Part shown: one piece after another, positions 49,283-57,031 of the stretch | Layout of the letters: the number at the start of each line of letters is the position of its first letter | How positions within the stretch are numbered: position 1 is the stretch's first letter | Source of the DNA: Macrostomum lignano | Taxonomy: Eukaryota | DNA length: 64,000 nucleotides | Assembly: GCA_002269645.1 (NCBI GenBank) | Contig: NIVC01000691.1 | Coordinates: 186,001 to 250,000, forward strand | Direction of reading: 5' to 3' | Notes under the pieces: model-generated | The model's input: the letters and a program-made list of their open reading frames with translations, nothing else | Told to the model about the DNA's origin: nothing | The model's database searches: none | Position numbers and translations under genes: made by a program

Positions 49283-50325
49283 TCAATATCGAACGCCGTG
49301 GATTTTGTCCGCCAGCTTGAACAGTCCCTTGTTTGCCTCTTTCTTGAAGATTTTGTACGGAGCCTTCAGTACGGCGATCGCGACTCCTGCATGCAAATTT
49401 TTGGCATTCACTTGAGTTTTGAAATTTTACCTTTTGCGTCTAACAGATGGCACCCGTGTCTAACAGCTGTGGTGTGTCTAGCAGCTGTGGTGTGTCTAAC
49501 AGCTGTGGTGTGTCTAGCAGCTGTGGTGTGTCTAACAGCTGTGGTGTGTCTAACAGCTGTGGTGTGTCTAACATGCAGCTGTGGTGTGTCTAACATGCAG
49601 CTGTGGTGTGTCTAACATGCAGCTGTGGTGTGTCTAACAGCTGTGGTGTGTCTAACAGCTGTGGTGTGTCTAACAGCTGTGGTGTGTCTAACAGCTGTGG
49701 TGTGTCTAACAGCTGTGGTGTGTCTAACATGCAGCTGTGGTGTGTCTAACAGCTGTAATGTGTCTAACAGCTGTGGTGTGTCTAACAGCTGTAATGTGTC
49801 TAACAGCTGTAATGTGTCTAACAGCTGTGGTGTGTCTAACATGCAGCTGTGGTGTGTCTAACAGCTGTGGTGTGTCTAACAGCTGTGGTGTGTCTAACAG
49901 CTGTGGTGTGTCTAACAGCTGTGGTGTGTCTAACAGCTGTGGTGTGTCTAACAGCTGTGGTGTGTCTAACAGCTGTGGTGTGTCTAACAGCTGTGGTGTG
50001 TCTAACAGCTGTGGTGTGTCTAACATGCAGCTGTGGTGTGTCTAACAGCTGTGGTGTGTCTAACAGCTGTGGTGTGTCTAACAGCTGTGTGTCTAACAGC
50101 TGTGTGTCTAACAGATCAGATGTCTCTAACAGCTGACATCAGAGTCTAACACTTGAGATAGCCATCTAACAGCTAGCACTGGAGTCTACTTGCGTGCAAA
50201 TCTGTGCAAATAAAATTTTGGCGACATCCAAAAAACTTACTCTTTGGGCATCCGTCAGCCACTGAGGTGCTCATGATGACGAGACTGAGTGCTGCTATGA
50301 TGAACAGAAACCGCCACATGCGCAT
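49283..50325 (-). CDS. Secreted cationic peptide P1, 2 exons, 62 aa, no recognised family
   Basis: Exons 50325-50241 and 49386-49283, a|gtaagt donor, tgcag acceptor, phase 1: MRMWRFLFIIAALSLVIMSTSVADGCPKRVAIAVLKAPYKIFKKEANKGLFKLADKIHGVRY*. Hydrophobic signal peptide; paralogy to P2 and P3. Confidence 0.8.
49455..50110. repeat. 18-bp minisatellite in P1 intron
   Basis: ctaacagctgtggtgtgt units. Confidence 0.95.
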
Positions 50326-50560
50326 GTCGATAGCGGGTTGAGCTGCTAAACTGCTCAATAGACAGCAGGATGACTTACTTGTTATTGAAATGGCTTGCGA
50401 TGGCTATAAAGTAGATGCATCAATTGCGCATCATATTTTGTAAGAACGCATTCCCAAGTTCTCAGTAATTCGTTCCTTAAAAGAATAAGTAATATAACTT
50501 ATGATTGCAGTATCTCTATGGTCTAACCAGTCAACTTACACTACTCGGTTTTAAAATAAC

Positions 50561-51811
50561 TTACTAACTTACTAACTAATTAACTAACTAACTAACTAAC
50601 TAACTAACTAACTAACTAACTAACTAACTAACTAACTAACTAACTAACTAACTAACTAACTGACTAACTAACTAACTAACTAACTAACTAACTAACTAAC
50701 TAACTAACTAACTAACTAACTAACTAAATAACTAACTAACTAACTAACTAACTAACTAACTAACTAACTAACTAACTAACTAACTAACTAACTAACTAAC
50801 TAACTAACTAACTAACTAACTAACTAACTAACTAACTAACTGACTGACTAACTAACTAACTAACTAACTAACTAACTAACTAACTAACTAACTAACTAAC
50901 TAACTAACTAACTAACTAACTAACTAACTAACTAACTAAATAAATAACTAACTAACTAACTAACTAACTAACTAACTAACTTACTAACTAACTTACTTAC
51001 TAACTAACTAACTAACTAACTAACTAACTAAATAACTAACTAACTAACTAACTAACTAACTAACTAACTAACTAACTAACTAACTAACTAACTAACTGAC
51101 TGACTAACTAACTAACTAACTAACTAACTAACTAACTAACTAACTAACTAACTAACTAACTAACTAACTAACTAACTAACTAACTAACTAACTAAATAAA
51201 TAACTAACTAACTAACTAACTAACTAACTAACTAACTTACTAACTAACTTACTTACTAACTAACTAACTAACTAACTAACTAACTAACTAAATAACTAAC
51301 TAACTAACTAACTAACTAACTAACTAACTAACTAACTAACTAACTAACTAACAAACTAACTAACTAACTAACTAACTAACTAACTAACTAACTAACTAAC
51401 TAACTAACTAAATAACTAACTAACTAACTAACTAACTAACTAACTAACTAACTAACTAACTAACTAACTAACTAACTGACTGACTAACTAACTAACTAAC
51501 TAACTAACTAACTAACAAACAAACAAACTAACTAACTAAATAACTAACTAACTAACTAACTAACTAACTAACTAACTAACTAACTAACTAACTAACTAAC
51601 TAACTAACTAACTAACTAACTAACTAACTAACTAACTAACTAACTAACTAACTAACTAACTAACTAACTAACTAACAAACTAACTAACTAACTAACTAAA
51701 TAACTAACTAACTAACTAACTAACTAACTAACTAACTAACTAACTAACTAACTAACTAACTAACTAACTAACTAACTAACTAACTAACTAACGAACTAAC
51801 TAACTAACTAA
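50561..51811. repeat. (TAAC)n microsatellite, ~1.25 kb
   Basis: About 310 copies with sparse TAAA/TGAC/TTAC variants. Confidence 0.97.
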
Positions 51812-52275
51812 TGTTAAATGCGGTTAAATCAGATGATTAGGAACGTTTCAGAAAATTTACTGTAAATGTCTAACTTTAAATAAATCTCGTTTAAAGTTAA
51901 GATGTAAATTCTTGTTTTCAGTTAAAAATACTTCAAAAATAGTTACACGTAACTTAAATATTTCCTTTCTTTTATATTTTTGTTTATTTAATGTTGTTAA
52001 CAATGAAATTCCCAAATTGCATTTTCAACAAAATAAAACTTGTAACCACTATCGACATAGCGTCGTGTTGTCGTGTTTCAATGAAAAAAAAACAAAAAAA
52101 ATTACTTCTACCAGTCATGCAAAAGGTTTCGCATTACCTAACACAGATTATTAATGGTTCACTCGAGTTTCTTACTACTCCAAGACAATAAAATAGGTCT
52201 AAAAGTGCTACTTAAAGTAAGCAATAAGAGCACGTAGTCAGAAAATATTTAAATTTAACAAATAAGTGTTGCAAT

Positions 52276-54864: not shown

Positions 54865-55735
54865 GGTTTTGAGGTTGTGGAGTTTAGGGGTTGTGGAGTT
54901 TAGGGGTTGTGAAGTTTAGGGGTTGTGTAGTTTAGGGGTTGTGTAGTTTGGGGTTTGTGTAGTTTAGGGGTTGTGTAGTTTAGGGATTGTGTAGTTTAGG
55001 GGTTGTGTAGTTTGGGGTTTGTGTAGTTTAGGGGTTGTGTAGTTTAGGGGTTGTGTAGTTTAGGGGTTGTGTAGTTTAGGGGTTGTGTAGTTTAGGAGTT
55101 GTGTAGTTTAGGAGTTGTGTAGTTTAGGGGTTGTGTAGTTTAGGGGTTGTGTAGTTTAGGAGTTGTGTAGTTTAGGGGTTGTGTAGTTTAGGGGTTGTGT
55201 AGTTTAGGGATTGTGTAGTTTAGGGGTTGTGTAGTTTAGGGGTTGTGTAGTTTGGGGTTGTGTAGTTTAGAGGTTGTGTAGTTTAGGGGTTGTGTAGTTT
55301 AGGGGTTGTGTAGTTTAGGAGTTGTGTAGTTTAGGGGTTGTGTAGTTTAGGGGTTGTGTAGTTTAGGAGTTGTGTAGTTTAGGGGTTGTGTAGTTTAGGG
55401 GTTGTGTAGTTTAGGGGTTGTGTAGTTTAGGAGTTGTGTAGTTTAGGGGTTGTGTAGTTTAGGGGTTGTGTAGTTTAGGGATTGTGTAGTTTAGGGGTTG
55501 TGTAGTTTAGGGGTTGTGTAGTTTAGGGGTTGTGTAGTTTAGAGGTTGTGTAGTTTAGGGGTTGTGTAGTTTAGGGGTTGTGTAGTTTAGGGGTTGTGTA
55601 GTTTAGGGGTTGTGTAGTTTAGGGGTTGTGAAGTTTAGGGGTTGTGGAGTTTAGAGGTTGTGTAGTTTAGGGGTTGTGTAGTTTAGGGGTTGTGTAGTTT
55701 AGGAGTTGTGTAGTTTAGGAGTTGTAGAGTTTAGA
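54865..55735. repeat. 16-bp G-rich minisatellite
   Basis: gtttaggggttgtgta units, ~54 copies. Confidence 0.95.
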
Positions 55736-55887
55736 GGCGGTTAAGTCTGAGGTCGCACACGGTCGCACTGAGCAGCAACTACTCAAACAACCCAGTAGAC
55801 GGCCGATGTCCAAAGGCTGTTGTCGAAGCAGCCGCAGAAGTGGAATAATAAAAAACGCAGCGAACTCCAGTCTGCAAGTCTTTGTTC

Positions 55888-57031
55888 TCAATACTTGTAA
55901 TTCGTATTTGACCTTGCTCTCAACAAAGCTTCCTGTGCTTTCAATTTTTTAGTTTGTTCCGGCAGTCGATGAGACCTGCGGCGCATGTACTTGTTAAAGA
56001 ACTTCTTTGAGGCCTTAAGTGGGGCCTTCGTAATGAACTTAATTACTTCTGCGGGCCAACAATTGGGTTAGGAAAATAAAGTGACATTTTTTCAATATAC
56101 TGTTTGTAAACACCGCTAAATACCATCTACATTCGTGATTTGGCGCTGTCTAGATTTGTGATTTGGCGCCATCTACATTTGTGATTTGGCGCCGTCTAGA
56201 TTTGTGATTTGGCGCCATCTACATTTGTTATTTGGCACCATCTAGATTTGTTATTTGGCACCATCTAGATTTGTTATTTGGCGCCATCTAGATTTGTGAT
56301 TTGGCGCCGTCTAGATTTGTGATTTGGCGCCGGCTACATTCGTGCTTTGGCCGCCATCTACATTTGTGATTTGGCGCCACCCACATTTGTGATTTGGCGC
56401 CACCCACATTTGTGATTTGGCGCCACCCACATTTGTGATTTGGCGCCACCCACATTTGTGATTTGGCGCCATCTACATTTGTGGTTAGACGCAAACTACA
56501 TTTGTGATTTGGCGCCATCTTTCGTGGTATGGCGCCATCTGCATTTGTGATTTGACGCCATCTGCAATCGTGGAAGCCTCTTTTGAAAAGCAAAATTATG
56601 CTTAAAAAATAATAATTGATTACACCTGCCCCAATGGGGCCAGATGTGCAACCGACAGCTCAGCCGCAGCTATTGCGCGGCGCATCTGAAGGCTGCGTAC
56701 GGCTGTTCAGTCCAAGGACTGGGGGTCGCCACACACAGCCTCAATTACCCCAGCTAATGCTGGCACCCATTTTACAGCTGGGTGAACTGAAGCAATGCAG
56801 AGTTAAGCATCTTTCTTAAAGACACAAATTGTTCCAGTGGGATCGGGAATCGATTCCCCGACCTTCAAATCTTAACCACTAGCCCTAGGCTACAACCCCA
56901 GGCAAGGCTAATGTTAAAATTATGCTTTGAAAAAGCTTACTCGCAGGATTGCAGCAATCGCCAGTCTGAATAAACTCTGAAAGCAGCAATAGAACACCAA
57001 CCAGAAGCAGCGCTCTGGTCGCCAAATGCAT
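55888..57031 (-). CDS. Secreted cationic peptide P3, 2 exons, 83 aa, no recognised family
   Basis: Exons 57031-56941 and 56048-55888, a|gtaagc donor, cgcag acceptor, phase 1: MHLATRALLLVGVLLLLSEFIQTGDCCNPAKVIKFITKAPLKASKKFFNKYMRRRSHRLPEQTKKLKAQEALLRARSNTNYKY*. Confidence 0.78.
56120..56560. repeat. 23-bp minisatellite in P3 intron
   Basis: catctacatttgtgatttggcgc units. Confidence 0.9.
56650..56892 (-). mobile_element. tRNA-derived CORE-type SINE copy in P3 intron
   Basis: Minus strand starts tagcctagggctagtggttaag (A-box-like), ggtcggggaatcgattccc (B-box-like), then a CORE-like ...atgcttaac...cccagctgtaaaatggg; 3' boundary uncertain. Confidence 0.55.

Follow-up and report, generated by a model that had tools for sequence, protein, structure and literature searches.

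What do the short, closely spaced two-exon genes in a minisatellite-rich part of the Macrostomum lignano genome encode, and what might their products do? We addressed this question in a 64,000-nt stretch of contig NIVC01000691.1 (assembly GCA_002269645.1, positions 186,001 to 250,000 of the forward strand), hereafter the window, in which an earlier note had proposed three hidden minus-strand genes (P1, P2, and P3, at 49283-57031) for secreted cationic amphipathic peptides. Coordinates are positions in this 64-kb window; those of a further gene, P4, that lie beyond 64000 are window-extended coordinates. The locus is a four-gene tandem family of paralogous two-exon genes, and P1-P4 are uncharacterised, predicted secreted cationic helical peptides. 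We are highly confident that the family is real and secreted. The outcome is a refinement of the annotation together with a hypothesis on function, not a demonstrated new mechanism.

Four paralogous two-exon genes

Strand reading and scripted splicing reproduced the proposed minus-strand models of P1, P2, and P3, including their coordinates and GT-AG phase-1 introns. All three donors are GTAAG, and the acceptors are (C/T)GCAG. The first exons end in GCPK, GCPI, and DCCNPA, as had been reported, and the three 30-residue strings quoted for the second exons proved correct. The genome search with P2 identified a fourth paralogue, P4, which straddles the right end of the window and enlarges the proposed set of three members to four. 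Its intron is likewise in phase 1, with GTAAG..CGCAG boundaries. The encoded proteins comprise 62 (P1), 146 (P2), 83 (P3), and 132 (P4) amino acids.

P1 begins with an 85-nt exon 1 (50241..50325; this and all following gene features are on the minus strand), which encodes the predicted signal peptide MRMWRFLFIIAALSLVIMSTSVADG and CPK and stops after one base of the following codon. The intron (49387..50240; 854 nt, phase 1, GTAAGT..GCAG) consists mostly of an 18-mer minisatellite at 49456-50135, and exon 2 (49283..49386) encodes (R)VAIAVLKAPYKIFKKEANKGLFKLADKIHGVRY and the stop codon. A likely poly(A) signal, AATAAA, lies at 49066..49071, 212 nt downstream of the stop codon. In P2, the 91-nt exon 1 (54140..54230) encodes the predicted signal peptide MSTNLTHFIAVLTVLLTASQLVDLGHG and CPI, again with one base of the following codon; the intron (52626..54139; 1514 nt, phase 1, GTAAGC..TGCAG) is mostly a 20-mer minisatellite at ~52708-54083. 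Exon 2 (52276..52625) encodes the core SLTKSIVKSSFKGGQRFVNKKLYQLADKIH and then an 86-residue Lys/Ala-rich tail, and a likely AATAAA poly(A) signal is located at 51983..51988, 288 nt past the stop.

Exon 1 of P3 (56941..57031), also 91 nt long, encodes the predicted signal peptide MHLATRALLLVGVLLLLSEFIQTGDC and CNPA and likewise extends one base into the following codon. The intron (56049..56940; 892 nt, phase 1, GTAAGC..CGCAG) contains a dispersed repeat at 56724-56908 and a 23-mer minisatellite at 56123-56563, and exon 2 (55888..56048) encodes KVIKFITKAPLKASKKFFNKYMRRRSHRLP followed by EQTKKLKAQEALLRARSNTNYKY. No AATAAA was found within 600 nt of the P3 stop codon. Exon 2 of P4 (63908..64212) was read from the DNA past the window, its 3' end (63908..64000) being inside; it is preceded on the minus strand by the 1173-nt intron (64213-65385), which contains a ~23-mer minisatellite ~620-1290 nt past the window end, and by exon 1 (65386..65479), outside the window. 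The P4 protein reads MNFALKPATSQIIFGVCLLLWILRCAEC, then CPIKIAKEVTKSAFNFGQKKVNKQLYKISDKIH, and ends in a 71-residue Ala/Lys/Glu-rich tail. An alignment of the 400 nt upstream of P1-P4 revealed neither a conserved block nor a common promoter motif. The four paralogous introns are each dominated by a different minisatellite, unrelated to the others, with units of 18, 20, 23, and ~23 nt; across introns and spacers, several of the units carry CAG or GCAG, which generates many cryptic acceptors.

From the acceptor onward, the 31-residue cores in the second exons align gap-free, as had been claimed for P1-P3, with 7-16 identities of 31 across the six pairs of P1-P4. For every pair, the ungapped BLOSUM62 score exceeded those of 20,000 composition-preserving shuffles (p ≤ 2e-4), and the match between P2 and P4 was significant genome-wide (E = 4e-5 to 8e-5). 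A core HMM run over six frames of the window plus 10 kb (74 kb) returned the four genes at E ≤ 1e-17, and the next match had E = 1.3. In the alignment, all four proteins open with a hydrophobic stretch; an acidic residue comes next, Cys-(Asn)-Pro lies where exon 1 ends, and the core then follows the pattern x-K-x-x-x-K-[AS]-[PS]-Φ-K…N-K-x-L-[YF]-x-[LI]-[AS]-D-K-I-H. P3, the most divergent member, retains the first half of the core and has lost the LADKIH end. A frameshift behind its divergent C-terminal half was considered and rejected, as the other frames, inspected by hand, hold no LADKIH-like sequence.

The genes had been described as hidden and unannotated, which holds for P3 only. The P1 product is identical to GenBank PAA78406.1, and also to PAA51524.1 and PAA90415.1 (BOX15_Mlig011746g1/g2); the P2 product is 100% identical to PAA78407.1 (BOX15_Mlig010865g2); both are named 'hypothetical protein'. 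The exact P4 sequence is present in NCBI as well, so that P1, P2, and P4 were already deposited and only P3 is new to the annotation. For P3, neither an exact look-up nor a profile search of 1.84e9 representative proteins returned an entry in the protein databases searched. Transcripts, both RNA-seq-guided (StringTie/TACO) and de novo, were the sole basis of the assembly annotation, with open reading frames (ORFs) called by TransDecoder, and transcripts overlapping annotated repeats were dropped before GenBank submission (PMC5730564). The splice junctions of P1, P2, and P4 thus have indirect transcript support, since the models are letter-for-letter the proteins of a transcript-only annotation, and the removal of repeat-overlapping transcripts could be why P3 is absent. 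Exact-protein look-ups for contigs from other samples gave no match.

One database name differs. UniRef100 A0A1I8IU74, which is the exact 62-residue P1 sequence, is named 'NTR domain-containing protein'. An NTR/TIMP-like module (PF01759) in P1, either its own or fused from a neighbour, was rejected, as Pfam shows none in P1. The five NTR loci of the genome all lie on contigs other than the three that carry the family, and the name may stem from a longer or fused gene model in an older assembly.

A genome search, which had been suggested as a check, was run with P1, P2, P3, and P4 against 764 Mb in 5269 contigs and placed the family at a single locus, present on three contigs: that of the window (C691), C110, and C3410. 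M. lignano is a neopolyploid whose genome redundancy is known (PMC5730564, PMC10733133), and the three-copy locus fits this redundancy. All eight exons, the ORFs, and the splice sites are intact in all three copies. The P1 intron differs in length in C110 and C3410 with its splice sites kept, and intron and spacer lengths vary among the copies in general; the distance between P4 and P3, for instance, is 6.9 kb on C691 and ~2.5 kb on C110. This variation is consistent with differences in minisatellite copy number. The genome searches and the core HMM on the 74 kb yielded no further paralogues beyond P1-P4, each in three copies. The copies, homeologous or allelic, allow the locus to be compared with itself.

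The earlier note had recognised no known family, and P1-P4 match none in Pfam, in PDB sequences, in PDB folds, or among the 1.84e9 representative proteins. When P1-P3 were scanned against Pfam at E ≤ 1, nothing beyond sub-threshold noise appeared (Peptidase_M3_N, ClpS, MtrG), the best match of a sequence profile search of the PDB had E = 0.16, and Foldseek returned 0 matches for the P4 model against the PDB. A HMMER profile of the family run against the representative proteins recovered only P1, P2, and P4 themselves, and a word-indexed search of 5.8e9 proteins with P2 matched only two M. lignano copies. The family is species-restricted in the sense that it has no annotated relative; other Macrostomum species were probably not in the libraries searched.

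Predicted secretion and helical core

The analysis supported the proposed layout, in which tandemly clustered genes encode a signal-like N-terminus and, after it, a cationic part with amphipathic helices. The N-terminal hydrophobic runs of P1-P4 span 11-13 residues with a mean Kyte-Doolittle value of 2.7-3.3; they have the length of signal peptides and are too short for a membrane span. Judged by the small-x-small (-3,-1) rule rather than by a trained predictor, one aligned column qualifies as a cleavage site in all four proteins (ADG/CPK, GHG/CPI, GDC/CNPA, and AEC/CPI, with the slash at the predicted cut). The phase-1 intron sits two to four codons past this site. A phase-1 intron just after the signal peptide is a known bias of secretory genes, as was reportedly described by Tordai and Patthy in 2004.

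The same N-terminal segment might instead be an uncleaved anchor, which would make P1-P4 small membrane proteins with a cytosolic basic part, according to the positive-inside rule. The extremely basic C-terminal parts would suit this topology, as would the helix that AlphaFold2 gives to the N-terminal segment. Against it stand the hydrophobic runs, too short to span a bilayer, and the acidic residue and small-x-small motif at one aligned column, which are the signature of a cleavage site, and we consider an anchor very improbable.

Counting from the conserved Cys gives net charges of +8 for P1, +18 for P2, +15 for P3, and +12 for P4; hand counts for P1-P3 had been about +7, +18, and +14. AlphaFold2, applied as a structure prediction to P1 and P4, gave helices only. 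In P4, these cover residues 7-25 (signal), 30-60 (core), and 63-131 (tail), with a mean pLDDT of 81; in P1, they cover residues 4-25 and 28-57, with a pLDDT of 67. Averaged over alignment columns, the hydrophobic moment of the core is greatest at 95 degrees (0.52), and amphipathicity is significant in two core segments, positions 1-17 (p = 0.004) and 12-31 (p = 0.03); 18-residue windows reach muH values of 0.54-0.66. The hydrophobic residues thus recur with helical spacing in the segments, near 95 degrees, as had been proposed, but not in one continuous 31-residue helix, for which the amphipathicity at 100 degrees was not significant in P1 or P3. We attribute this to a Pro/Gly hinge, at the conserved K-[AS]-[PS] and G positions, that interrupts the helix.

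Every member has one or two Cys residues, which in P3 and P4 are two adjacent ones. In the three longer members, a Pro follows the core (HDP, HKP, and LPE) and precedes tails that differ from one another. The P2 tail consists of a Pro/Gly linker and a Lys-rich helix and ends in -AMGR, the P3 tail has 23 residues, and that of P4 contains 26 Ala among its 71 residues, has a net charge of +6, and ends in -RWG. A C-terminal G or GR is the usual amidation signal of helical antimicrobial peptides, and the -GR of P2 and -G of P4 could be such signals.

Selection and candidate functions

Between the paralogous cores, synonymous sites are saturated (pS 0.55-0.78), and dN/dS is ~0.36 within the set P1, P2, and P4, rising to 0.5-0.8 in pairs that include P3. 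Since synonymous sites are saturated while the core dN/dS stays at ~0.36, the family is old, with its core under purifying selection, and not uniformly fast-evolving; the earlier description as fast-evolving applies to P3 only. The locus would be a clean case of an old orphan family under purifying selection in a minisatellite-rich genome.

Among the three genome copies, P1 has 4 synonymous and 0 non-synonymous differences; the between-copy pN/pS is 0.3-0.6 for P2 and 0.56-1.2 for P3, near 1 in the comparison with C110; P4 is identical in all copies. Non-coding flanks are 97-100% identical between copies, which gives these between-copy tests low power. The full identity of P4 was rejected as a sign of constraint, as its flanks are equally identical. 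P3 on C3410 is an exception, with 82-90% identity in the intron against 93.5-97% in the exon segments (20-nt flanks included).

P3 is the member for which chance or decaying ORFs without function come closest to an explanation. It is missing from the transcript-based annotation, lacks a nearby AATAAA, has lost LADKIH, and has a pN/pS near 1 relative to C110. Its ORF, donor, and acceptor nevertheless remain intact in three copies despite the 10-18% divergence of the intron on C3410, and the repeat filter applied before GenBank submission could account for the annotation gap. For P1, P2, and P4, the transcript-derived models and the conservation exclude decay, and we give it only a slim chance, essentially for P3 alone.

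Our preferred reading, held by analogy at a rough probability of 0.4, is that P1-P4 are host-defence effectors resembling antimicrobial peptides in an epithelial or gland secretion. Exon 1 would encode a cleavable signal peptide cut at the shared (-3,-1) column, so that the mature peptide would start at Cys-(Asn)-Pro. A 31-residue basic helix-hinge-helix core (…NKxLYxLADKIH) would follow, after which P1 would end and P2, P3, and P4 would continue in a further Lys/Ala-rich helical tail. The N-terminal Cys would most plausibly form an interchain disulfide that yields a dimer, and polyanionic membranes or surfaces would be the most plausible targets of the cationic amphipathic helices; helices of this type are known to bind LPS, anionic membranes, and further polyanions. 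We place this role first because of the cationic helices, the single Cys in the N-terminal region, and the cecropin- and dermaseptin-like layout and clustering. Linear cationic helical host-defence peptides, a class of function and not of homology, have a secretory signal, a net positive charge, and an amphipathic helix, and P1-P4 combine such a charge with a predicted signal and predicted amphipathic helices.

Three groups of cationic helical peptides offer comparisons. Cecropins of insects and nematodes, with relatives such as stomoxyn, consist of a signal followed by a ~35-40-residue peptide made of a cationic helix, a Pro/Gly hinge, and a second helix; their genes are short, have one intron, and lie in tandem clusters, a C-terminal Gly is used for amidation, and Cys is absent. 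P1-P4 resemble them in the signal, the helix-hinge-helix plan, the short one-intron genes, the tandem cluster, and, in P2 and P4 only, the C-terminal G or GR. They differ in having one or two Cys and a second helix that is also basic, where cecropins are Cys-free with a hydrophobic C-terminal helix, and further in the conserved N-terminal Cys-Pro, the DKIH motif, and the long extra tails of three members. In amphibian dermaseptin-type genes, exon 1 encodes the signal and a few residues, exon 2 encodes the active cationic helix, and the genes are clustered; in the precursors, the signal peptide is conserved, the propiece is acidic and terminates in KR, and the mature peptide is hypervariable. 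The flatworm genes share the two-exon logic and the clustering, whereas their signals vary, they lack an acidic propiece, and conservation lies in the mature core. Halocidin and dicynthaurin of tunicates and distinctin of frogs are short cationic helices with a single Cys and an interchain disulfide; P1-P4 would resemble them in the cationic helices and the predicted dimerisation, and P3 and P4 differ in having two adjacent Cys.

Within flatworms, the nearest counterparts are the trematode helminth defence molecules (HDMs; FhHDM-1, Sm16), small secreted, mainly alpha-helical proteins whose best-conserved part is a ~35-residue amphipathic helix; they bind LPS and membranes and have been described as trematode-specific (PMC3093369, PMC7373315). 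Like HDMs, P1-P4 are flatworm-restricted and combine a predicted signal peptide with a small helical protein, a generic likeness that is insufficient for membership. The conserved helix of HDMs is C-terminal and largely hydrophobic, whereas that of P1-P4 is N-terminal and strongly basic. An hhalign comparison of FhHDM-1 residues 51-89 with the family profile gave a probability of 0.2%, and no HDM was among the matches of the profile search of 1.84e9 proteins. By analogy, the closest functional models for P1-P4 would be linear helical host-defence peptides such as cecropins and, among flatworm proteins, the HDMs; P1-P4 belong to neither cecropins nor HDMs.

Several observations weigh against a host-defence role. 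At E ≤ 1, P1-P3 have no Pfam match to cecropin (PF00272), and the PDB profile search detected no significant similarity to antimicrobial-peptide families, the best being stomoxyn at E = 0.47. Mature P2 and P4, with 119 and 104 residues, are long for linear antimicrobial peptides, and the tail of P4 is low in charge and rich in Ala. The signal cleavage is a rule-based call, and the between-copy tests are of low power. The identifiers Mlig011746, Mlig010865, and Mlig007395 have no match in the full text of the literature searched; identifiers and peptide strings are also unmatched in the searched supplements of M. lignano papers, a weak negative, as id versions differ between transcriptome releases. 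Finally, purifying selection together with the invariant or near-invariant polar residues (N, K, and D-K-I-H) points to a specific partner.

We therefore give real weight to a role with such a partner and consider it possible, if somewhat unlikely. Besides the conserved polar residues (N, D, K, and H) and the purifying selection, we weigh here that P2 and P4 are long and that the searches returned no expression or activity match. P1-P4 would then be secreted ligands, either a signalling peptide or hormone or a protein that uses the conserved N-terminal Cys and the NK.LY..DKIH face to dock onto a defined molecule of the matrix, mucus, rhabdites, or adhesive. The conserved Cys-Pro at the predicted mature N-terminus is in line with this, as are the possible amidation signals of P2 and P4 and the hydrophobic spacing of the second helix, which, read from the pattern, is heptad-like and would suit a coiled coil. 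Hormones, on the other hand, rarely combine so high a net charge with variable tails. The hallmark of neuropeptides and prohormones is also missing: the alignment contains no conserved mono- or dibasic cleavage site, and KR follows Cys-Pro only in P1. Known flatworm prohormones and adhesive proteins did not appear among the matches of the database searches.

A reproductive secretion, produced by the prostate (as seminal fluid) or by cement or shell glands and acting on the partner, sperm, or eggs, would also explain proteins that are small, secreted, lineage-restricted, and tandemly duplicated. M. lignano has many prostate-limited transcripts with signal peptides and without homologues (PMC5977470). 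These seminal fluid candidates come from the same species and are likewise small, secreted, and mostly without homologues; the set is defined by expression pattern (PMC5977470). The between-copy pN/pS of P3 would agree with fast evolution of this kind. The cores of P1, P2, and P4, on the contrary, have been kept over saturated synonymous divergence, unlike seminal proteins with their fast turnover, and identifiers and peptide strings were unmatched in the seminal-fluid and reproduction supplements (PMC5977470, PMC7336406), which counts for little where id versions differ. We regard a reproductive role as plausible in this species but improbable, as it fits the old, constrained core less well. 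If the peptides were reproductive or signalling molecules after all, the Cys-Pro…DKIH module would be a new type of ligand.

The host-defence reading can be sharpened into a bolder form. We know of no endogenous antimicrobial or cytolytic peptide that has been characterised in free-living flatworms, and P1-P4 might be the first such antimicrobial family: an orphan class whose Cys-Pro N-terminus is exposed by signal peptidase, whose Cys staples a covalent dimer or is modified (for example, by acylation), and in which P2 and P4 are multi-helix precursors. In this full form, the proposal is doubtful. M. lignano is transgenic and amenable to RNAi, and a compact four-gene locus is quickly testable in it.

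Repeats and other features of the window

The spacers of the cluster are tandem repeats. P1 and P2 are separated by (TAAC)n in ~314 copies (50557..51811), P2 and P3 by a 16-mer minisatellite in ~54 copies (54873..55734), and P3 and P4 by a 19-mer minisatellite in ~331 copies (57433..63715; 6.3 kb), which is far shorter in the C110 copy. The dispersed repeat in the P3 intron (56724-56908, minus strand) is ~185 nt long and has a tRNA-like 5' part (…GGTTAAGATTTGAAGGTCGGGGAATCGATTCCCGATCCC…). At least 1757 candidates were counted across the genome, and those that were scored are 86-95% identical. ARAGORN and Rfam made no call on it; it is probably a short interspersed element (SINE).

Elsewhere in the window, a Ty3/Gypsy-type pol region (7419-10816, minus strand) contains RVT_1, RNase H, integrase zinc-binding, and rve domains according to Pfam. 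It is flanked by two pairs of long direct repeats (3249-3548/13350-13649 and 5184-5468/15286-15570) that are 10,101 bp apart and 100% identical, an arrangement that suggests either a young element with long LTRs or two elements in tandem. At ~41100-41600 (minus strand), we recognised by eye an exon with the HxxEH zinc motif of an M16 (insulinase/nardilysin-type) peptidase, after which the frame stays open through a 31-nt or 118-nt tandem repeat. A 279-residue open frame at 47376-48215 (minus strand) has no Pfam match, and its overlapping frames resemble the RNase H part of a non-LTR retrotransposon in a decayed state. Much of the 64-kb window consists of tandem repeats whose units measure 16-40 nt (32 rows score at least 200), and these give rise to strong local swings in GC- and AT-skew and to many long spurious open frames.

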